This document shows, in pieces, positions 17,919 to 31,420 of a stretch of 64,000 nt of DNA. This DNA comes from Heteronotia binoei (lineage: Eukaryota), in assembly GCF_032191835.1 (NCBI RefSeq), contig NC_083240.1, forward strand, positions 48,484,001 to 48,548,000. Direction: 5' to 3'. How positions within the stretch are numbered: position 1 is the first letter of the stretch; each line of letters starts with the position of its first letter. Position numbers and translations under genes: made by a program. Under the pieces are notes generated by a model. That model made no database searches. It was given only the letters and a program-made list of their open reading frames with translations, and was not told the DNA's origin.

Positions 17919-18169
17919 TTAAGTTGTCTTCTGTTTTTCTCCTGAGCTGTATGAGGGATGGAACAACATGGTCCCCAGGAGGAGGAGGGGGATCAGCAAA
18001 TATGGGCTATAAATGGCACAAAGCCTGAGGCGCTCTAGCCACGTCTGTGGTCCTGCGGGCTTGGAGTCTGAGAAATCGTGGAACAAAAAGTGTGCCAGCA
18101 GGGGCACCAGTGTTGTGGCCACATGTGTTGCATAGATGATGGCAGGGGTTCGAATCCACTTGCAGTTAC
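17919..18169 (-). CDS. TMEM97: TMEM97 (sigma-2 receptor) coding exon 3
   Basis: (G)NCKWIRTPAIIYATHVATTLVPLLAHFLF...YSPYLLIPLLLL...EKQKTT*; AG acceptor at 18170-18171; C-terminal KxKxx ER-retrieval motif. Confidence 0.96.
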
Positions 18170-18779
18170 CTGGATTTAAAAGGAAAAGGAAAGATTTTTA
18201 GTCCCTTCTTTCCCATCTTGAGTTCCAAACTGTTATATAATGTATGTGCCGACAGCAGTGATGAAGAAGAAGAAATCTTGCCATGGCTGGCAGGTGCCTT
18301 CCCAGGGTGGTCTTATAAATGCTATTCTCTACCCCGGGGGTCCACCGCCTTTGTGAGCCTCTGGCCCCCCTTGCAATGCTGACCGCCTGTGGTGGGTGTA
18401 GGCAGCTGCTGCAGAAGGCAGAACCAGTCACAACATGGCTGCTGCAGCTTCCCTTCAATCACACAGGGAAGGAAGAGCCTTGGGCTGCTGCCAAAGACTC
18501 TTTTTAAAAAGACCTGCACGGCCAGTGAAGTCCCCAATGGCCAATCAAAAACCTACCTGGCCTCCCCCACCTGGTGGGTGTCATGGTGCGTGGGGGATTC
18601 CGGCTCAATCGGTTCTTCAGAGGGGGATCAAGCTGGCCTCTAAAGGGACTCCTCTGTGCTTGCACCTGGAGTGTTTCCCCCATTGCAATCCCTTTTCTCT
18701 TTCCACGTGAGGCCAGTCTGCATTCAGGCCCCAACTGTGGGCAGGCAGCCCCTTTCCCCCCTCTCCCAAATAAGTCATT

Positions 18780-19380
18780 TTCTACCAATACCAAACCTTT
18801 AATAGCATAACAATTGCAAATGAGATACACAGAATGTAAAAAGTTTAAACATTGGAGATAAAATCAAAAAGAAACCCAGATTACAAATGCATTCTTACAT
18901 GGTCAGATTTAAATTTAAGAATGTCAGCCAAAAATTATGCCACAGCCTCGCTAACCTCCCACTCAGTATCATTCAGTAAATAAAGACAGGGTGGCAATAT
19001 AGACAGATCTGGGGAGAAGAAAAGCTTGCAAAATGGATCTTTACAGAGAATATTTGGAACAATCAAGCAATATATGCTGAATTGAGTTGGGAATATTCGC
19101 TCCACAGGAACAGAGTCTATCACATAAAGGGACTCGATGATATCTCCCCTGTAAAACTTTGGGAGGGAAACGCAGTTCATCTAGCCAACATAAATGCCCT
19201 GCGATGACTTGGAATGGTTAAGTCTGATAAATAATGGGGCATTTTACCACCAAAAACTCTGAGACCTAGGGATGTTGGGGAGCAGATAGAAGGGTCTGTT
19301 GGGCATGGTTTCATTTCTTCCAACGATCTCAGTTTAATACATCTGAAGATATATGACTCATCAGATGTCATTTTCTAAAA
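18780..19380 (-). mobile_element. LINE 3' fragment related to 10176-11030, in TMEM97 intron 2
   Basis: PHYLSDLTIPSHRRAFMLAR-like frame, degraded; boundaries approximate. Confidence 0.5.
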
Positions 19381-20637
19381 GCAGAGGGGGGGATCTTTTC
19401 CTGCCCTGTCACTGCTGGGGCAATATTTTGTCCTATTTTATTTTCCCCTCATCCAGGCTGTCATGTGAACTTTTTTGTTTTTAAGCACTGAGCAACACAA
19501 GCTGTGCTGTTGTTGGTAGTGCACAAATACAACACTGTGTGCATGTGTCTTTCAGTGATCCTCACACACATTTCACTCTGGGGGGGGAGGGAAATCACAA
19601 AAGGGAGGGGGGATCCAGGCTTCCCAGCTTGTTGCCATTAGCATAACCAAGGGAAATCTGCTGGACCCCCCATTGGGCTTGAGATAACAATCCAACTTGG
19701 AATGCAAAGCGATTCTGCCTACACAAGGCAGAGGGAGGAATCTGCTTCTCCTGAGAGGGGAGGGAATTGGCACCAACCTCAGGGGGAACCAGGGAGGGGG
19801 GGAGGATCTTCCTCACTGGCTTCCCCAGAGCACAAATGTTGCCCAAAAGTAGGGAGCGATTAATTCATTAAAGGGAGTCAAATGAGAAGAGAGTAGAAGG
19901 ATTCTAGTACTGAGGCTGCTCAAACATGGAGGTTTAGAAGAGGAGGAGGAGGAAGAAGAAGAATTATTTCAGCTGAGTGATTCCCAAGCAGTGGTATGCA
20001 TATATTCCAAATTAAAAAGAAAGGTTGGGCAGACAATCACAATGATGGCCTGACAAGGAGGAGGTGGTAGCCCAAAATGCATCCAGTGTAAAAGGGAAAA
20101 TGGATTCTCTGTTGCATCTGGAATCTCTGTGGAAAGTGTGAACTGACAAACAACACTTCAGAGCATGTTCCACAGGGACACCACCCCCCTTCCTGCAGCA
20201 CAGAAGCAGCCGAGGCGATTAGAAATCCAAGTCACGATCTCCCCACCTTCCCTAGTATCTGAAGTTTCAGCAGCTTCCTTCTGTGCTCCCGCCGAATGGA
20301 GCTTTATCCAGATGGACTAGAAACAAGCATTTAAAAATTCAGTTGTCCTGGGTGCTGGACTGAGCCCAGCACCAGACCAGTGCGATTGTGGTGCAGTGGC
20401 CAAATTCAGGGCCCCCACTCTTGACACAGCCTGTCCTTCCAAAAGGAAGCAGGAAGTGACACTTTCTAGGGCTGCTGTGATGGATGAGAGAAGCCCCAAT
20501 GCCTGGGTTGAACATAGCAAAAGTGGGGCTGCCTGGGGTTTTCAATGGGCCTCCTGTTTGCAGTAATGGGGAGAGGCCCGGCTCCCTCCTAGGGCCAGAA
20601 GCCCAGCCATCCCCTCCCCCCAACCTCGCCCACTGAC

Positions 20638-20782
20638 CTTTCCAGAATGCATAAGCTGCCACAGGGAAGAAAGGCAGCTGCAAGAAGACTTCACAGAACA
20701 GGAAGGATTTGAACCAGGCAGGGCACTGGGCCACCAAGGGGTCCTTAAATGAAGTTGTGTACCAGTTGAGCATCTCTGTCAG
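20638..20782 (-). CDS. TMEM97: TMEM97 coding exon 2 (145 bp)
   Basis: [48 protein letters not shown]; canonical AG/GT; phases consistent. Confidence 0.97.
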
Positions 20783-22159
20783 CTGAGGAGACACAAAAAG
20801 TCAGAAAACTTACTTTCCCCACCGATACCTCAACCTTCCAATCATCAGCTAGCTGCAGAAGCAGCCCAGCAACTCCATTTACTTGGGCAGGAAAGAAAAA
20901 CCTCTGGGAAGTAGAACTGTCAAACAATTATTCAAACTGATGGTTCTACTCCCCAGTGGTTTTCCTTTCCTGACTGGTATTCACATTTGGGGGTTCCCTT
21001 TATTTGGTTGCTCACCCTATTTACTCTCCCAGCCAGTTCCTGCTTCCCTTCACCCTCCCCCACAGTGCTCTGCGCCTTGGTCACCAGCTGCTTCTGTCAT
21101 GGTGGTGGAAAGAAAGGGCTGCCCAGTCCAGTCACAGCCAGGGCATGCTGCCCAGGGGAGGGGATCCCTGCTGGTGCCGAGAGTGAGAAAGGTCAGCCAC
21201 AAAGCCTGGACTGTTTCCACCAAGCGCTCACCCAGAGGTGCTCAGGGCCCTTTCTGTGTTCAATCTAAGTCCGGGGGCAGGGAGCTGTCGGACAGCGTCC
21301 TACTTCATGAGTCGGGGGGTGACCTGCGGGGAGCATCTGTAGGGTGCTGGAGACCATGACTGGGTGCTAAGGGGCCCTTCGTTGGGATCCTGAGCTGCTT
21401 GGGCTCCGTCCTGTGGGTGTGGTGGAAGGGGCTGCTGTGATTGTTGACTTAACGGGGCCATTAATGGGCTCTGCTGGCATTGCTTGCCGATGCAACTTTG
21501 CCCCTGTCCAGGGGGAGCCATCATGCCCCCAGCGGGCCCACATCCCTGCCAGCAGCGCCAGCAGTCCTGAGCAGTGGGGCCGCCTGAGGCCTCTGGTGCA
21601 ACTGGGGGGGGACTCAACCTGACATGTACTGGAATGCTAGAAGGGTCAAGCTACAGCCACTGAAATTAGGATCAAAATAAATACTATATGGTGTACACAA
21701 TAGTAAAATTAAAAACACAAGGCCTGAATGAGTATCAGGCTGCATTAAGATTCAAAGCAGGCGTTACATAAACTGCAATAACTTCCCCAATAAAGCTGAT
21801 GAGCATGTCCAATGTGCAACACAAGACAATACACGTTGCAGCCTCCTGGGCCTTCCTCAGCAGTCAATAACAACCCTTTTAAGACTCCACGTCGATCCTG
21901 ACCAGATGTCATCTCGTGCATTGTGTCAATTAACAAAGCAGTCTATGGCAACTGCTTTGTTGATGTTATAATCTAGTGTCAAATTCTGGGTGTGCGTGGC
22001 ACCCCCTGGAATGGAATCTGAGGGGAATGTGTATTGTCACGCAATAATTCAGCAAGAAGCGCACAAACACGCACTAGAGGGAAGCGGAACCTGTGACTGG
22101 CCAAAGAGCCGGAGTTCCGGGGCCACCGCGGAGGAGGCCCCTCTCCCTCTCTCTCTCAC

Positions 22160-22276
22160 CGGCGCGGGGTGCCAGGCGGCCGAGAGGGCCTGGGCGTCCA
22201 GCAGCAGCGTCAGCGGGATGTGGCTGGCGAAGTAGAGCGCGAAGAGGCCCTCCAGCGCCCGCGCGGCCGCCGCCAT
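22160..22276 (-). CDS. TMEM97: TMEM97 coding exon 1 (117 bp)
   Basis: MAAAARALEGLFALYFASHIPLTLLLDAQALSAAWHPAP followed by GTGAGA donor; joined CDS 513 bp = 170 aa. Confidence 0.95.
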
Positions 22277-22426
22277 CGCCGCTCCCTCCCCTCCCCGGGC
22301 AGGCCGCGGGGGACGCTGGGGCCGCCAGACCGGGCCTCTGCGCAGGTGCGGGGGCGGGGCGCGCTTCCCGGCATGCCCTGCTGGAGGGAGGGAGGGAGAC
22401 GGGCGCGTGGCGGGCGGAGGAGGAGG

Positions 22427-22519
22427 ATGGCGTCGGGGGCGCCGCTGGGCTGCTCGCTGCGGCGGCTCAAGAGCGACTCGCACTGCCAGATCAGCTGCTA
22501 CTTCGACCAGCACTACATG
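22427..22519 (+). CDS. NCBP2/CBP20-like cap-binding subunit paralog, exon 1
   Basis: MASGAPLGCSLRRLKSDSHCQISCYFDQHYM aligns to the CBP20 N-terminus (SDS...Y.DQH); GTAGGC donor. Confidence 0.85.
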
Positions 22520-22615
22520 GTAGGCGGGGGCGGGGGGGGCTGAGCCGCGGAGGGAGGCCCGGGCGGGGGGGGCTGTGCTGCCGGGCCTGTCGCTCAGCGG
22601 TGCCTTCCTTGCCAG

Positions 22616-22797
22616 GGGATCCCCGAGCAGCAGCTGAAGGCGCTGCAGACCTCCACCACGCTGTACGTGGGCAACCTCTCCTTCTACACCACCGAGGAGC
22701 AGATCCACGAGCTCTTCTCCAAGTGCGGAGACGTCAAGCGCATCGTCATGGGGCTGGACAGAGTGAAGAAAACCCCTTGCGGCTTCTGCTTTGTGGA
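22616..22797 (+). CDS. NCBP2-like exon 2 (182 bp, RRM)
   Basis: [61 protein letters not shown]; followed by U12-type donor GTATCCTT. Confidence 0.95.
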
Positions 22798-23793
22798 GTA
22801 TCCTTGCCTTTGAGCGCTAGTTATTATTTAAAACTTCTCAGTGCTGCAGTTCCACCCAGTTGGAGTCCTTAAGGCAATCAACATTAAAAAAAATCAAGCT
22901 GTTAAGATACAGTCGAGAATATAACATTCAATTAAGAACGCTGGAAGGAGGACCAAAAACCATTCTTGGGGGTTTCCAGATCAAGCAGAAGTCTTCACCT
23001 GCTGGCAAAAGACAATAGAGAGGGGCAGGTTAATCTCCTAACACAGGGAATTCCAGAGTTTTGGTGCCATAATGGAGAAGGCCCTTTCTTTGGGTGCCAC
23101 TCATCTGGTTTCAAATGGCAGGGGCAACCAAAACAGGGCCTCCAAGGATAACCAGAGTGAGTATGCTGGTCCCAGGCTGTGCTGGGCTACAAAGGTAAAA
23201 ACTTGCACCTTGAATTGAGCTGGAAGCCAGTGTAGGTGGAACAAGACTGGAGCAACATGGTCACTGTTGACACACTCCAGTTTGTTGTTCTGCTACCCTT
23301 TAAAGCCCTAAATGGCCTGGGGCCCTCATACCTTTAGGATTCCCTCTCCTGGCACGATCCTCCCAGTCTTCATCTAGTGTGTTTAAGATTTATTGGGCTT
23401 GAATCTAGTGACTTATTCTGATTGCATCCCTCCTGTAAAACTGGTTATTTGAGTGGGGCTCTGAAGTAGTTTCCTACTAACCAGGCTGAGAGACTTGCTT
23501 CGCTTTAGAAACAGCATTGTATTGCACTTAGTGTTCAAAAGAAGAAACCCAACCACAGAAACAGTGTGGGTACTCAGAAGGCTGAAACAACAAACTGAAA
23601 AATAACAAAGTATTTATTACACAGTGTAACAATTGACAGTTAAAAACAAGATAGATGCATAGAAATACTAAAATCCAACCTATAGAAATGTCATTGTTGA
23701 TTGGGGGAGGGGGCTTTGGGGACCTCCTGTCTTCTCTTGAGCTCGGGGCCAGCCAGTGTCAAGTCTTCAGATGTCCTTACAGCAGTGTTCCAG
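22798..23793 (+). other. U12-type (minor spliceosome) GT-AG intron
   Basis: 5' site GTATCCTT; branch-like TCCTTAC at 23774-23780, 13 nt before the intron end (acceptor ...ttccag); no long polypyrimidine tract. Confidence 0.88.
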
Positions 23794-23932
23794 ATACTAC
23801 ACAAGAGCAGAAGCTGAGCACTCTATGCGGTTCATCAATGGAACCCGGCTGGATGACCGCATCATCCGAACAGACTGGGATACCGGGTTCAAGGAAGGGC
23901 GGCAGTATGGCCGTGGGAAGGCAGGTGGCCAG
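23794..23932 (+). CDS. NCBP2-like exon 3 (139 bp)
   Basis: [46 protein letters not shown]; GTAAGG donor. Confidence 0.96.
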
Positions 23933-24681
23933 GTAAGGAACACAATGTTTGCAGATTTTAGACAAGCCTGAGAAATCTAGCAGATATTGGGCTGGTTCTG
24001 ATTTGGGTCTGAATATGGGTGTTGTGCCCCACATGCTCAGGATGGGGCTGGTTACTAAGGTGTGCCAGTAAATGTCCAGCTAGTGCAACACATCCAGTAA
24101 GTCAGCTTGCTGTCAAAAGTGAACACCTGGGTTGGAAGCTGCACCAGAGACCAGAGGGTGAAATAACATGGCTCTGGGCCCTGCTTCTTCCAGGCCAAAG
24201 AGTGAACCTGCCCTCTGCAGAATTATCTCTGCAGAAACGCGAATTCGAAATAGGGCGTGTCAACAGCCTGGAGAAAAACATTTTTTTAATAGAATATTAA
24301 TGGGATTTTATTTACTAGATGTTACCTGCATGCCATGAAAAGATTCAGCAGCTTTTTCCATGAATTCCCACTAAATAAATAAATGTCCAGACATTCAAAG
24401 GAACGGGACGCTTTGCTCCAGGTTGAAAATGAGTCAGGGATGCTCTAGGCTGATCCTGCCTCGATGGTCTGTGGGGCCCCTTCCAACTCTGGGGTTCTAA
24501 AGTGGTGCCAACTTGAGCTCTGACAAATTCATTCTTAAAAATTCCAGGTTATCATCCTTATAAGTACCTGTGGCTTTGGTGAGCTAAAAAACAACTAATG
24601 ACACCAATTTAGAGCGATAGTTCTGGGCAAGTTCTCCTGTATCTTTGTTGCTCTCTGTTTTGTTCTCATGTTTCCCTCTAG

Positions 24682-24780
24682 GTTAGAGACGAATACCGGA
24701 CAGACTACGATGTTGGGAGAGGTGGCTTTGGCAAGATCATTCAGATGCAGAAATCAAATCAGCAGACAGTGATTTACTAG
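24682..24780 (+). CDS. NCBP2-like exon 4 (terminal)
   Basis: [32 protein letters not shown]; joined CDS 513 bp = 170 aa. Confidence 0.95.
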
Positions 24781-25173
24781 CAGCTTCTTGGATTGAAGGC
24801 AAAAGGAAGAGGAAGACCGGATTCTTCTCGGACTGTGGGGGGGGGGGGCGATGTTGTTCACAATGGCAGAACTGTCCCTGGACTCTGAGGGTACAAAGCG
24901 GTGGTTTTGCCCCCTGGAGCTCTAGTGGCCCTTCTTGCTCTGGCTAATGCAGGGGATGTCTTCCAGGGTTATGTGCTTGTTTGGCAATGCCCAAAGCGCA
25001 GAGCTAAGGAATCCCAACCCTGTCACAATCTCTGGCCCAGCTGGATTAGGACAGGAGGCAGACAGTGGTCTGTGGAATTTGACTGGCTCTTTGCTCTCCT
25101 GGCTTTTCCAGTGCAGTACCTTTGGTGTCCTGGTTTGCCTGTTTTGAATCCTTTATTCTTTTAAAGATTCCTA

Positions 25174-25179
25174 AATAAA
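25174..25179 (+). terminator. Candidate poly(A) signal of the NCBP2-like gene
   Basis: AATAAA ~390 nt after the stop, followed by a T/GT-rich tract. Confidence 0.5.
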
Positions 25180-25889
25180 TTGCACATCCTGTAACTTCTG
25201 CTGTAGTCTGTAATCATATGGTGGGTGAAGAGAATAGAGAATGGGAGTTCTCTCATCCAGGGGAGTGATGATCTGTGCAGGGACTTTTCTTATCTTCCGC
25301 CTTCAGACATGTATTTATTTCCTGGGCCAAGAGGGAGTGGCAGACAGGAGGGGGAAGGGCTGACTTTTTTTTTGCCCTTCAAGGAGTCTCCACCAAGAAC
25401 CTGCATCCTTCTCATACGTTCTTGGAACAAAGTTCTACCCTGCAGACACCATGCAGGAGTCGGCAGCAAGCTCACCACCGTTGAGGGCCAAATTACATGT
25501 CCTCATAGCTGTCGTGAGGCTCTCACTATCCTTGAGGGCATTTTCCTGACCTTCCAATCCTAAAGGAGGATATTTTAGGTTTTCTTCAAAAGAGCCCAAA
25601 TGAGGACAGACATCATTCAAGGGAGTAGTCTGAAACAGCAGAACAAAATTTGTGTTTAGAGGCACCTTGAAGACTAAAAAAGTTTTATTCTGGATATAGA
25701 AGCTTTCTTTTGCAGGCAGGGTACATTGATACAGTGGTTGGTGATGTCTGTTTCAGTGCACCTGAAGAAGTGCACATGAGCACTGCTGCCAGCCTAGAAG
25801 CTCCAGCAAAAGAACTTCTCAGGGAAACTTCTGCCTAAAACGGCTGACATTGTCAAGCCATTTGATACCACCTGCGGAGAACTGAACAA

Positions 25890-26125
25890 GAACATAAGAC
25901 CACAAGAGAAGGCATGTTCGATCAGGCCAATGGCCCATCCAGTCCAACACTCTGTGTCACACAGTGACCAATGTGTGTGTGTATACATATCTCTCTATAC
26001 ATATATACACACACATACATATACACACGCATATATATATATACTGTGGCTAACAACCACTGATGGACCTCTGCTCCATATTTTTATCCAATCCCCTCTT
26101 AAAGCTGGCTAAGCTTGTAGCCACC
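25890..26125 (-). mobile_element. CR1 3' fragment with internal (TG/TA/CA) microsatellite
   Basis: Closely similar to the 3' end of the CR1 at 33106-33310. Confidence 0.8.
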
Positions 26126-26959
26126 AACAAACACTTGAGTGTCTTCCCTCATTAGGACCTGAGCAAAACTCTCCAGCTTTAACGGGACTGGGGGAATCCC
26201 ATTCCCACCCATTCTCCCCTGCTGCTGCCTTCTTCCCTCCATCCATCCTGGGAGACTCCAGTCCTCCATGTTCAGTCAGAAAAGGTCCCAATCCCTTGGC
26301 AGACAGATGGACATTTCTAGTATCTTAGTGAACACGGGATGAAAGTGGAGAGGTGGTGCTCTTTGGAGTCCCCCAAATTGCCCCTGGAGGTCCTGGGTGG
26401 GACGTGGCAGGCTGCACCCTGCATGGGGGCCTCCTGCATGTCCAGGGATTCAATTCACTGGCAAACCAGGGCAAAGATTTGGGGGTGACATTTTCGGCTC
26501 TACCTTCCACAGGGAAGATGTGTTGACCCAGTGAAGGGTGGAGGAGAGAAATGGAGACTCCTGGGGAGCAAGCTGAATCCCAGTGACGCTGTTTCAGGCT
26601 GAGTGGGAAAGCCCTCTTGCAGATGCTGGGCTGGTTAAGACATAGAGACTGCTTTGGATTCTGGAATCATTTTCATGATTCTGTCCTTTTCCTCACCTTT
26701 CCTCATGTTTGTGGCTTAGTCAGCACTGCTGGACCCTTGGCTGCTAGGCTGAAGAGCTATCCCCATTGCTGAGCCAACTGGTTCAGTCTGCAGCTTTTCT
26801 GCATTCAAACTGCATGTGGTGTGCCCATGACCCAAAAGCTGGACTGCAGCCAGAAAACTGAGGAGCCTCTGCAAAAGCTCCCCAAGCAGGAATTACTAGT
26901 GACCCTGGCACCTTCCAAGTCCCATTTGAAAAGAAACGAGGCATTTCTAAAAACAATAA

Positions 26960-26965
26960 TTTATT
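26960..26965 (-). terminator. Candidate IFT20 poly(A) signal
   Basis: AATAAA on the minus strand ~255 nt past the IFT20 stop. Confidence 0.45.
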
Positions 26966-27219
26966 TCCCTGGATCATGTTGCACTTAAAAAGACTCCCCA
27001 AATGGCAGGGAGCAGAATTAACAGCAACAAGGACAGACCTTCTCCAAACATGGTCTGGGTATTTCAAACTGTCAAAAATTTCTTTTAAAAAATTGTCAGC
27101 CTTCCTTGGTGTGACCCTGGAATCAATTCATGACTATTGCAAATTGCTCACTGTGGAATCCTCAGGGTGCTGGAATGGTTCAAGTTGTCCCAATCTATTG
27201 CTGCTGATTGTGGGGTTTT

Positions 27220-27301
27220 TTATTTCTGGAATATGAACTGGTCGATGAACTCATTCTGGTCCACTTCTGTCTTGCAAAGTGTTTCGTATTCCACACGATA
27301 C
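27220..27301 (-). CDS. IFT20: IFT20 last coding exon (82 bp)
   Basis: [26 protein letters not shown]; canonical acceptor. Confidence 0.96.
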
Positions 27302-27776
27302 CTGTGGGGTGGGGGTTACTGGTTAGCAGGTTGCATTGAATGACAGCAACTCAGAGCAAGGGAGATGCTTGAATAACCAGAGGGAACCTGCTATTTATTT
27401 CAGGTGTACTGATGCATGTTACAAGGGATTAGGCAACATTCTTGGAGGAGAAATCCATCAGTCGCTATCAGCTGTGGTGCCAAAGATGCACTGCCCTGTT
27501 TGGAGACAGCTGAGCCTTCGGGCCTCGGTGCCTCTGCTTGGCCACTCTCTATGGTGGTGGTGAAGATGGACCTTTGAGGCTGCTTTGGATTCTCAAATCA
27601 CTGTTGTGGTTCTCTGTCTGCTTCCTCAGAGTCTGACAGGGCACAGAAGGCTGGCTGCAATGTGAGAGCCACTCCTTGGCCAGGCAAAGAATGGGGCTGT
27701 CGGCTCTCCCTGTACACTAAAATTGGAGCGGTGAGACTGTGGGGACTGTTATCAAAAATAAGCTTGAGGACCTCAC

Positions 27777-27880
27777 CTTTCCAGCTGGGTTGTCTTCTCC
27801 GCTATTAGTGCCTGAAGCTGTTGCTGCTGAGCCTCTCTCTGCTTTGTGATCGATTTCAGCAAATTCCGGGCCCCTATTGC
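27777..27880 (-). CDS. IFT20: IFT20 coding exon 3 (104 bp)
   Basis: [35 protein letters not shown]; AG/GT sites. Confidence 0.96.
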
Positions 27881-28146
27881 CTGAGGAAGAGAGGAGTGCA
27901 GAATGTTTGTTTTGTTTCAGTTGTCCCAAGGCAGCAATGATATCATTAGGAGTATTACTAAATTAACAAGACAATCCTGTGAGCTTTAAATCTGCATACA
28001 TTTTCATAGTTGTGGAAAAAAAGCCATTTTAAAGATACTGCACGCATCAGAGAAACCAACATTTCAGAAGAGGCATTCTCTGCTGTGTCTGAGAGAGGAA
28101 CCTGCCTGGTAAGAAAGCGAAGCCATTCAATTCTGCATGTACATAT

Positions 28147-28394
28147 GAACATATGAAGCTGCCTTATACTGAATCAGATCTTTGGTCCATCAAAGTCAGT
28201 ATTGTCTTCTCAGACTGGCAGCGGCTCTCCAGGGTCTCAAGCTGAGGTTTTTCACACCTATTTGCCTGGACCCTTTTTTGGAGATACCAGGGATTGAACC
28301 TGGGACCTTCTGCTTCCCAAGCAGATGCTCTACCACTGAGCCACCGTCCCTCCCCACTGAGCCACCGTCCCTCTACCACTGAGCCACCGTCCCT
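28147..28394 (-). mobile_element. tRNA-related SINE with triplicated 5' head segment
   Basis: Pol III B-box-like ggttcaatccc on the minus strand; ccactgagccaccgtccct repeated at 28333, 28354 and 28376. Confidence 0.72.
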
Positions 28395-28729
28395 GTAGGA
28401 GAAAGAGGAATGCCCATTATCAGCTTTAGATTTATTTATTAATAGATTCTCTATGTCTTTGTTAACTTACGAATCCATCCATAAAATAGGCCAAAAGAAG
28501 CCACCAACTGAAACTGAAAAGATTTGCAAGTACATACATGAAAAATTGCAGGGTAGGGGTAAGTGTGTGGGACAAGGACCTGGATTCAAGTCTCCATATT
28601 GTCAGGCATCTTGCTGGCTTATCTTGCACCAGTCATACACATTCAATCTAAACTACCTTGCAGGGTTGTTGTGAGGATAAAAGAAGGAAGAATGAATCGC
28701 TCTGAATTCCTTTGGGATAAAAATTTACT

Positions 28730-29220
28730 CAGGGGTGTCAAATATGCGACCCGGGGGCTGAATCGGGTCTCAGGGCTCCTATCAGCCCCCAGAGCAACTT
28801 CTCCTGTACCACAGCTTGCTTTGCAAGGCTTACTCAATTGCACAGGAGCTACAGAGCAAAACCTATTTTCTCCATTGGCTGAGGCTCCTCCCTTGGGGAG
28901 GAAGGGGGGTAGGGAAAGCTTGGTTTGCCAGGCTCTCAATCACACAGCAGAGCTATGAGCCAAGCCTCTCTTCATTCTATTGACTGAGGTTCCTCCCCTC
29001 CTTCCTGGTCTCCTGTGGAAGGAAGGAAAGAGTCAGAGCTTCCTTTGCCCAGTTCCATGGATCCCATGAGAGATACACAAAGAAAGCAGCTTTTAAGACC
29101 AACCAGTGCTAATTTTAAAGCATGTTGTATTTTAAGGGGTTTTTTTTTAATCTTTCAATTGTATTTTTCTGTGTCCTTTACAAAGTTTACATCTCTGCTC
29201 TGTGGGGGACCTTTTAAATT
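28730..29220. mobile_element. hAT-type MITE (same family as 4735-5318), 3' truncated
   Basis: Starts caggggtgtcaaa; internal sequence shared with the other copies. Confidence 0.8.
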
Positions 29221-29445
29221 TTTAATAGATGCTTAACGGAGGCACTGACTTGGCATTGTAGCCTTCCAGATCTCACCTCTGCCTCTTGGTCAGAGTAGTC
29301 CACATGGCTCAGGAGGATTCAGGGCTCATGATCAGCTTGGCTTTGGCAGCGCAGTAGGCCTGCTCCTGGGGTCTGGGAGGGCAAACCCCTGTGGCAGTTC
29401 TTCTGGGGAAAGCCAGGCAGGGTGTTGACACTCAGGACTTCTTAC

Positions 29446-29531
29446 CTTAATCTTCTCGTTTTCAGCTGCTTTTGCTTGCTGATCGACCAGCTCAATGAAG
29501 TTGCCCACGGTTTTTTTAAATTCTGCGATTT
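29446..29531 (-). CDS. IFT20: IFT20 coding exon 2 (86 bp)
   Basis: (K)IAEFKKTVGNFIELVDQQAKAAENEKIK; AG/GT sites. Confidence 0.96.
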
Positions 29532-30755
29532 CTGTAAAAGAGGCAGAAAACAATGCTTCCATCCTGTGCAGCTGAGCTTATTCAGATAGGGCCTCAGGCA
29601 GAGAAGGGCCTTTCCCTGTCCCCACAGCCTGAGATCCATCCACTGGAGATGCCAGGACCACACTGGGAACCTTCTGCTCTCACTGCCTTCTGCACTGGGC
29701 CAAGTGGGAGCTCTGCCACTGAGCCACAGCTTCTTTCCAGCCATGACTGATGGATCCTTCCTGAAGAAAACACCACAAGTCCCTGCAGCCCAGTATCTCA
29801 CGACAGCCAGACCAGGTGCCCCAGAGAATCCCTCAAGCCAGTCCCGGAGCCAGCCCTCCCACCCAGCAACTCCTGTTCAGAGGTCTGCTGACCTTGACCT
29901 TGGAGATCCCCATTAGGTATTGTGAGCAAAATTCCTTCCAGACAGGGACAAGTCCCCTTTACACCAGAGGCATTCACTAGAGCAGCAAATGAGAGGGTAT
30001 CGCTTTGCGCCCACCTCCTGCTTCCTCATTCAACACTGCTTCTGCTGGGGCTTTTATCAATAAAATTGGTAGCATATTGTAATTGCATAATCCTGCTCTA
30101 CCAAGGGTGGCCAAACTGTGGCTCAGGACCCACACGTGACTCTTTCACACACTATGCAGCTCTTGAAGCCCCTGCCACGCTGTTGGCCAGCTTGGTGAAG
30201 GCATCTGTCTCTTTAAATCCCTTCACCCAGCCAGATGGTGTTAGGGAGCTTCGAGAACACATTTAAAGTTAAAGTTGCTTTCTTTCCACATCTCCCTCCC
30301 TTCTCCCTCTTCTTTCTTTTCTTTTCCTCTCTTTCCTTGCTGGCTTACAGGTTGCATTGAGTGAAAGCGACTCTAAGCCGACTTGCTAATCTACTGTGTT
30401 ATGTCTGTAACTCCGCACAAGTAACTTCTGACCCTGGGAAAGAGTGGCACGCTGAAGGTCAAATGCATCTCAGACTTTTGAGAATAACCTGCTTCAACTG
30501 GAACTGATAATAAGGGTGGGATGCTCTTATTGGTAGGAAAAAAGGCGCTTTGAGTTTAACTTTGTAACAGCTTGCAGCCAAGGCTATGACTGTGTGCCTG
30601 ACCCTGGGCGGCTCAGTTTCACCAAGAAGCAGTCTTGGCACTGTAACATCTCCATCTAGTGAAAGCAGCTTTTCTGATGATGTCACAGAGGTGCTCAGTG
30701 ACGGGGATTGTGCAGCACAAAGAACTCCCCCCTCTCCCCAAACGCCAGCACTTAC

Positions 30756-30882
30756 TGTCCACAAAGGCTCTGCATTCGTCTTTCAGCTCCAGTGTTTGCT
30801 GGGACACCTCTGGGTCCAAAACCCGCAGCTTATTCAGCTCATCAAAGTGGAGACCAGCTTCTCCTAGGATGCCCTTGGCCAT
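30756..30882 (-). CDS. IFT20: IFT20 coding exon 1 (127 bp)
   Basis: [42 protein letters not shown]; joined CDS 399 bp = 132 aa. Confidence 0.97.
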
Positions 30883-31420
30883 CGTGGGCAGCTTCTGCCC
30901 GCACAGAAGAACGAGGCGCCCCCCGCCCCCCCTCGCTGCCACGGCGACAGCCCCCGCCTCGCGGTGCACTCTGGGCGCCGTAGTCCTCGCAGCACTTTGC
31001 ACACAGCCCCCCGCGGACCGAGGCCGGCGCGTCTGACGCCACGAGGCGCTTCTCCTCTCCTCTGCGGGGAGCCCTCTTGAGCTGCACCCCGAAGCCCACA
31101 AGCAGAACAGAACAGAACTCTGCGGCCTACGACCACCGCCGCGGGCTATTTGCTGCGGTTGCTTGGAAACCCTTAAAATGGCGGCCAGATATCGCGCCAT
31201 GCTGCGCTATCGCGGGTTCCGTTGCTATAGCAGCGCCAGCTCTCTTCCGGCTTCCGCGTTCCTGGCGGAGGCGTCGCCTGTCCCTTCTCGGGCTCCGTTG
31301 CCCGCCCGCAGCTTCGGCACGGCCTCGGGTTTCTTCCCCTGCCCGCCAGGTCGGCACGCTGACCCGTTCCCAGGGATCCGCCGCGCGGGCGGCAGAGCTC
31401 GGGACTGTCAAGCGTGGGAG
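30880..31420. promoter_or_regulatory. CpG island, probable IFT20 promoter / non-coding first exon
   Basis: CpG-dense; ETS-like cttccggcttccg at ~31243; acceptor-like site 12 nt upstream of the IFT20 ATG implies an upstream non-coding exon. Confidence 0.75.

Follow-up and report, generated by a model that had tools for sequence, protein, structure and literature searches.

A gekkonid-stem, DNA-level copy of a second vertebrate CBP20 (NCBP2) lineage probably lies between TMEM97 and IFT20 in Heteronotia binoei

We analysed a four-exon gene for the nuclear cap-binding protein CBP20 (NCBP2) that lies between TMEM97 and IFT20 in a 64,000-nucleotide stretch of the gecko Heteronotia binoei (contig NC_083240.1, positions 48,484,001 to 48,548,000 of the forward strand; hereafter the window). 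This gene is likely a functional, expressed CBP20 paralogue that arose in the stem lineage of Gekkonidae as a DNA-level copy of an NCBP2 gene of a distinct vertebrate lineage, which we call clade B. It is read from the plus strand and has an open reading frame of 513 nt for 170 amino acids; its three introns all have GT-AG ends, consistent phases and good polypyrimidine tracts (Table 1), and the window has no N runs. The product matches XP_060114969.1 (P0160) at 100% identity from end to end; RefSeq lists this Heteronotia binoei protein as 'nuclear cap-binding protein subunit 2-like', with its record on CM063342.1 of GCA_032191835.1. RefSeq has already annotated the gene, as 'NCBP2-like'. A preliminary description made from the sequence had proposed four exons with clean splice sites, a 170-residue RNA recognition motif (RRM) protein and an intact, intron-containing second CBP20 gene at a non-canonical locus. 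Its coordinates and gene model were exact, and model, spliced reads and synteny agree on an intact, transcribed gene. The word 'second' holds only in part: the extra copy is real, but it is second to another clade-B gene and not to the canonical NCBP2, as no clade-A gene was found in squamates (see below).

Vertebrate NCBP2 proteins fall into two lineages. We inferred two protein trees with 68 and 72 rows (LG+C20, careful search). Clade A (support 98/83 and 97/83) contains lamprey, skate, ray-finned fish, frogs, mammals including the mammalian 'NCBP2-like' proteins, turtles and birds. Clade B (99/94 and 99/95) contains lungfish, caecilian, salamander, turtles, birds and all squamates that were sampled; a coelacanth entry with a poor gene model is placed there as well. 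Both clades are present in turtles and birds and also in a salamander, where an Ambystoma clade-A fragment falls in the clade-A cluster. The window protein belongs to clade B, where it is grouped with Paroedura and Gekko kuhli (100/89), and not to the canonical clade A. Among the mammals sampled, none has a clade-B protein. Conversely, a turtle clade-A query retrieved no squamate protein above the clade-B squamates, and the clade-A gene was not found in any squamate. The earlier suggestion of an old paralogue lineage not seen in mammals is thus supported by both trees. The free tree favours the older date for the split between A and B, at the two early rounds of vertebrate genome duplication (2R); the younger date, an origin in the sarcopterygian stem, is not rejected by the approximately unbiased (AU) test (p 0.099). 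TEX11 and SLC7A3 presumably lie beside DLG3 on human Xq13 and NCBP2 near DLG1 on 3q29, which would fit ohnology. In the protein tree, the entry P0159 (UniRef A0A7N5J..., labelled Ailuropoda melanoleuca) is nested in the snake clade beside Python; this 'panda' NCBP2 is probably a contaminant or a mislabelled entry.

The genomic neighbourhood also places the window gene apart from canonical NCBP2. The penguin clade-A gene follows a Transferrin (MELTF-type) and a Glyco_transf_22 (PIGZ-type) gene, which is the canonical neighbourhood, and the window gene does not share this MELTF-PIGZ-NCBP2 synteny. Clade-B genes stand head-to-head with TEX11 (SPO22 domain) in Strigops, Rhinatrema, Hemicordylus, Podarcis, Eublepharis, Sphaerodactylus, Paroedura (P0277) and Heteronotia (P0143, on CM063335.1), and the Strigops gene (P0126) has an SLC7A3-type permease downstream. 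We compared the window gene with these TEX11-SLC7A3 genes (Heteronotia XP_060106082.1, Hemicordylus XP_053130267.1 and Strigops P0126). It shares their clade (99/95), their exon structure and their tail motif, and it retains residual intron and 3'-flank homology to the TEX11-SLC7A3 gene, its parent. In contrast to them, it does not adjoin TEX11 but lies on another chromosome in a new CpG-island context, and it has two extra N-terminal codons and a faster-evolving tail. Since the window gene lies away from TEX11 and P0143 lies at TEX11, the window gene is a daughter copy and not the positional orthologue.

These observations bear on two other views of the locus. The preliminary description had considered an ohnolog lost in mammals, and the TMEM97-IFT20 gene could itself be an NCBP2 ohnolog of 2R age, with this locus as its ancestral home. 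Clade B is indeed deep, separate from canonical NCBP2 and not seen in mammals, and the introns are retained, all of which would agree with such an age. We nevertheless regard this as very improbable. In six squamates, Heteronotia among them, as well as in a bird and a caecilian, the clade-B gene adjoins TEX11; the TMEM97 copy is nested inside Gekkonidae in the protein tree and in the non-coding DNA tree; and an intron identity of 69-83% to the parent is far too high for a split of 2R age. It is hardly credible that the window gene is instead the sole NCBP2 orthologue of the genome, translocated to a new place. RefSeq names the Paroedura gene at TMEM97 plain 'NCBP2', and the fact that no clade-A gene was seen in the squamates could be read in the same way, but Heteronotia and Paroedura each have a second intact four-exon gene at TEX11 (P0143 and P0277).

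Among the loci examined, the copy at TMEM97-IFT20 was found only in Gekkonidae, that is, in Heteronotia, Paroedura and Gekko kuhli. Heteronotia and Paroedura picta (P0140, L003) have the gene between TMEM97 and IFT20. In Gekko kuhli (L010, from CM122953.1) TMEM97 was not called, and an intact four-exon gene of 168 codons lies upstream of IFT20 (L010 10115-10201, 10634-10815, 14148-14286 and 15358-15456). The deposited Gekko kuhli model P0001, which has 130 aa and is flagged UNVERIFIED_CONTAM, predicts this gene wrongly. The copies kept at TEX11 in Heteronotia (L002) and Paroedura (L013) are likewise intact four-exon genes, and in protein clustering two B-type proteins of Gekko (P0280 and P0281) fall with the TEX11 type. 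Exon lengths of 87/182/139/99 and the positions of the introns are common to nearly all copies. Exon 1 has 93 nt in the window copy, compared to 87-nt first exons with GT donors in the Paroedura and Gekko kuhli orthologues, and the boundary between exons 1 and 2 is slightly shifted in the TEX11-locus copies (84/188 in Heteronotia, 87/194 in Paroedura).

The collinear homology between the window copy and the TEX11-locus paralogue (Table 1) spans introns 2 and 3 and runs ~670 bp beyond the stop codon; for exon 1, only the protein sequences show homology. The stretch that still aligns marks the footprint of a segmental duplication. A retrocopy, already disfavoured in the preliminary description, can be ruled out because three introns are retained at the parental positions and the homology to the parent persists in introns and 3' flank. 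To date the duplication, short non-coding blocks (700 bp of 3' untranslated region, the exon-3 flanks and the end of intron 3) gave star-like gecko trees, and only a gene-wide alignment resolved the date. In the tree from this alignment (2931 columns, mostly non-coding), Gekkonidae are supported at 100/100; within them, support is 100/99 for the TMEM97 copies and 94/96 for the TEX11 copies, and Eublepharis, Sphaerodactylus, Hemicordylus and Podarcis lie outside Gekkonidae. A clade that joins the TEX11 copies of gekkonids with that of Eublepharis is rejected by the AU test (p 0.0036, and p 0.0014 with a smaller set). Because of the DNA tree and this rejection, we place the duplication after the split of Gekkonidae and Eublepharidae and, as the tree suggests, shortly before the radiation of Gekko, Heteronotia and Paroedura.

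Four RNA runs from two studies provide evidence for expression. The joint between exons 2 and 3 (22797 to 23794, GT..AG) is present in all four runs and is covered by two assembled contigs and by 13 and 46 raw reads. The joint between exons 3 and 4 (23932 to 24682) is present in three runs, with one contig and 7 and 38 reads. RNA depth extends ~420-500 nt beyond the stop codon, to the AATAAA at 25174. We attribute the signal to the window locus since an X1 contig piece in exon 3 has no differences to the window, whereas the TEX11-locus paralogue is only 91% identical there and 81% identical in exon 2. The gene is hence transcribed and correctly spliced.

The product belongs to the CBP20 family. 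The exon 2 translation matches human CBP20 in the PDB (E 3e-25) as well as Pfam RRM_1 (E 8e-12), the exon 3 translation also matches human CBP20 (E 2e-22), and the whole product, compared to the PDB with phmmer, matches 5OO6_B, 6D0Y_A and 1H2T_Z at E ~1e-76 over residues 4-161. The protein thus combines a single RRM, with RNP2 and RNP1, with full-length similarity to CBP20. An AlphaFold2 model shows a beta-alpha-beta-beta-alpha-beta core with a predicted local distance difference test score (pLDDT) of 70-83; its overall confidence is low (mean pLDDT 58), with disordered tails. For the fold, the sequence match to the PDB is decisive.

In the full-length alignment, the window numbering equals the human CBP20 residue plus 5. 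The m7G (7-methylguanosine) cap-contact residues, which we take to be those of Mazza 2002 and Calero 2002, are identical at 14 of 14 positions (human Y20, Y43, F83, F85, R112, D114, W115, D116, R123, R127, Q133, V134, R135 and Y138). They lie in invariant columns of the family. The preliminary description had listed all of these except R135 as retained, and R135 is kept too. It had also counted 19 differences to human CBP20 among 111 core residues; the count here is ~22 of 116 residues of core and tail. The diverged N-terminal segment and the longer C-terminal tail that it described are present as well. What does not stand is the attribution of the C-terminal tail and the core differences to this copy in particular: the long tail (IIQMQK.NQQT.IY) occurs across clade B, as do most of the core residues that differ from human, and hagfish, fish and invertebrates share these features in part.

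Compared to human CBP20 (PDB 1H2T, 5OO6), the window protein is alike in having one RRM with N- and C-terminal extensions and identical cap contacts, and the layout of four coding exons matches that of other vertebrate NCBP2 genes. It differs in belonging to the other vertebrate lineage, at a different locus, in a tail that is 14 residues longer and in 45 strongly diverged N-terminal residues. Hagfish and invertebrates also have several of the clade-B differences, such as Cys at human S63 and Pro at A80, and these differences are hence ancestral. In the beta2-beta3 loop, the window protein differs from the human one by I70V, K75R, M76V and A80P. The groove of CBP20 that binds ARS2 and NELF-E uses this loop (residues 70-81), including the amide of A80 (PMC5670239); clade B has Pro at this position of the loop. 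Residues 1-32 and 125-150 of CBP20 stay flexible as long as no cap is bound (PMC5670239).

Selection differs between the parts of the protein. In the TMEM97 copies, the ratio of non-synonymous to synonymous substitution rates (dN/dS) for core and tail (125 codons) is 0.076, 0.055 and 0.028 at dS 0.41-0.55; for the core of the TEX11-locus orthologues of non-gekkonid lizards it is 0.036-0.038, so that the constraint is equally tight. For the first ~44 codons of the TMEM97 copies it is 1.42, 1.15 and 0.73, which is not different from 1 (p 0.63). The RRM core is thus under strong purifying selection, with an N-terminal tail that evolves near-neutrally. At positions conserved in the outgroups, the window copy has 12 derived changes in the N-terminal part and three in the core. 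The same pattern is seen between the Heteronotia lineages of the assembly and of the RNA runs: eight synonymous and no non-synonymous differences in the RRM core, compared to seven non-synonymous and no synonymous differences in the termini (Fisher p 0.0002). The latter are S23G, F26W, M31K, Q42K, T43N, K162Q and T167I, of which the N-terminal ones are in the ancestral state in the RNA runs.

Several points weigh against a working cap-binding protein of gekkonid-stem age. The N-terminal tail may be degenerating, because its dN/dS is indistinguishable from 1. Within this tail, substitutions have occurred beside the cap-stacking tyrosine (human R21>F, F25>Y and R26>M). Both the pairing with CBP80 and the binding of m7GpppN are inferred from conservation (core dN/dS 0.03-0.08). 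The junction between exons 1 and 2 depends on a single contig (X2), from a divergent Heteronotia lineage, which has a loose end of 30 nt upstream of exon 2 in frame (...IGCYWDQHYK before the joint and GIPEQQ after it). The RNA runs give no raw-read depth over exon 1 and the start codon, and this exon has 76-78% GC. Finally, ancient gene conversion between both loci could mimic the gekkonid-stem date and is the sole alternative to it.

Some of these points would be expected if the gene was an expressed but decaying duplicate, with a core conserved through youth or recent conversion and a degenerating N-terminal tail that already compromises cap binding. The N-terminal dN/dS of ~1-1.4, the 12 derived N-terminal changes and five further non-synonymous ones between the Heteronotia lineages are in line with decay, as is the degenerate appearance of another extra squamate copy (Elgaria P0083). 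However, a core dN/dS of 0.03-0.08 at dS 0.4-0.55 in three genera implies long-sustained purifying selection, the reading frame is unbroken in all three species, the transcript is spliced correctly, and Y25 and the other cap contacts are kept. We thus consider decay unlikely.

The functional paralogue probably arose as follows. The ancestral clade-B NCBP2 stood head-to-head with TEX11 and upstream of SLC7A3. In stem Gekkonidae, a duplicate of a ~3-kb segment with the whole four-exon gene was inserted into the CpG island at the 5' end of TMEM97, upstream of IFT20, where it may be transcribed from a promoter shared with TMEM97. Judging from conservation, the product would pair with NCBP1/CBP80 and clamp m7G between Y25 and Y48 like human CBP20, and geckos would have two interchangeable or partly specialised small subunits of the cap-binding complex (CBC). 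A working small CBC subunit would be the most likely mechanism.

How the two gecko copies share this work may be reflected in their constraint. The gekkonid TEX11-locus copies have a looser core (dN/dS 0.17, compared to 0.03-0.08 in the TMEM97 copies) and changes at otherwise invariant sites (G of 'NGT' to K, and T>I beside the cap-binding loop in Paroedura), and the Paroedura TEX11-locus copy has a four-residue N-terminal insertion. This pattern hints that the new copy at TMEM97 may be the more conservative of the two. The roles could even have been swapped, with the TMEM97 copy now the main housekeeping CBP20 and the TEX11 copy specialised, or the copies could form distinct CBCs by means of their N-terminal tails. 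In favour of this, the new copy probably gained a CpG-island promoter shared with a broadly expressed gene, and the depth ratio of NCBP2-like to IFT20 differs ~15-fold between two RNA samples. On the other hand, the counts are small and the comparison of constraint was chosen post hoc (Fisher p 0.011 to 0.19). We therefore regard a swap or specialisation of roles as a tentative possibility.

Extra CBP20-like genes beside the main one are also known from mammals (NCBP2L and 'NCBP2-like'); the preliminary description took human NCBP2L to be a retrocopy. Unlike the gecko copy, which keeps all introns and belongs to clade B, the mammalian NCBP2-like proteins of elephant, tenrec, bat, wallaby and rat fall in clade A together with mammalian NCBP2. 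They therefore originated independently of the gecko copy.

Further duplications are found in other squamates. In Sphaerodactylus townsendi, a tandem second clade-B copy lies beside the TEX11-locus gene (L009:21420-23807). Two clade-B genes lie on one contig in Eublepharis (P0133, P0282) and likewise in Rhineura (P0132, P0134), and Podarcis and Lacerta have two on different chromosomes (P0287 at TEX11, the others being P0292 and P0289). Elgaria has three, of which P0083 is changed at the cap loop and looks degenerate. Clade-B NCBP2 has been duplicated repeatedly in squamates.

To our knowledge, CBP20 is regarded as near-invariant and single-copy, and structural and functional studies all concern the mammalian (clade A) form. 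A second CBP20 lineage, in which the effector-binding beta2-beta3 loop contains a proline, is present in many non-mammalian tetrapods. This clade B seems to be the only lineage on which squamates rely, and geckos and several other lizards duplicated it again. We searched the literature for NCBP2 paralogy (NCBP2L, ohnolog, loss in mammals, reptiles) and found nothing. The A/B split, the apparent absence of clade A in squamates and the repeated duplications of B are not in the searched literature, though they can be read from public annotation. As it stands, the window gene is a well-documented lineage-specific duplication that is present in the RefSeq annotation as 'NCBP2-like' and not discussed in the literature found. 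More speculatively, and with a greater chance of being wrong than right in its entirety, two ancient NCBP2 lineages would have been lost reciprocally (B in mammals, A in squamates, with both kept in birds, turtles, salamanders and probably caecilians), squamates would have re-duplicated B repeatedly once A was lost, and the gekkonid copies might form two distinct cap-binding complexes that differ mainly in the cap-closing N-terminal tail and in their behaviour towards caps or partners (ARS2/NELF-E/PHAX). Should cap or effector binding differ between the copies, they would offer natural variants with which to dissect how the tail and the groove of CBP20 tune RNA fate.

Table 1. Features of the NCBP2-like gene and its surroundings (positions in the window).
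Feature	Position	Strand	Description
Exon 1	22427-22519	+	93 nt (31 codons) with the start codon; encodes the diverged N-terminal tail, in which Y25 equals human Y20
Exon 2	22616-22797	+	182 nt; RNP2, first half of RRM, RNP1; Y48, F88, F90 (human Y43, F83, F85)
Exon 3	23794-23932	+	139 nt; second half of RRM and cap-binding loop; R117, D119, W120, D121, R128, R132, Q138
Exon 4	24682-24780	+	99 nt including TAG; C-terminal extension (V139, R140, Y143) and clade-B type tail
3' untranslated region	24781-25200	+	AATAAA at 25174-25179; RNA depth drops past ~25285; probable poly(A) site, exact position inferred
Residual homology to TEX11-locus paralogue (L002 12005-17287)	22630-25446	+	blastn, seven collinear blocks, 69-83% identity
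CpG island, probable bidirectional promoter	22000-22800		holds TMEM97 and NCBP2-like start codons; putative promoter function
TMEM97 (sigma-2 receptor)	17919-22276	-	called gene, 170 aa, Pfam EBP (EBP/EXPERA family)
IFT20	27220-31200	-	downstream, convergent neighbour; called gene with Pfam IFT20

The start codons of TMEM97 (22276, minus strand) and of the NCBP2-like gene (22427, plus strand) are 150 bp apart in a head-to-head arrangement. The CpG island around them has a GC content of 0.76 and a CpG observed/expected ratio of 0.78 over 22100-22650, with RNA depth at 21988-22375. The translation of TMEM97 exon 1 matches PDB 7M93, 'Sigma intracellular receptor 2'.

An interspersed repeat and a (CA/TA)n microsatellite lie 3' of the gene (25868-26255), with a word depth of ~190,000 in metatranscriptome contigs and 50-330 in raw reads; this depth is almost certainly a signal of the repeat family and not of local transcription. 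Inside the span of IFT20, Rfam gives a tRNA match (53.5 bits) at 28279-28350 on the minus strand. As ~150 bp around it also match L002 and L004 (opposite strand), it is probably a tRNA-derived short interspersed element rather than a tRNA gene. Lastly, one X2 RNA contig (24706-27149) contains exon 4 and the 3' untranslated region and then skips from 25868 to 27149 with CT..AC ends, which correspond to GT-AG on the minus strand. An antisense or extended IFT20 3' transcript that overlaps the 3' untranslated region of the NCBP2-like gene could explain this skip; an assembly chimera is equally possible.

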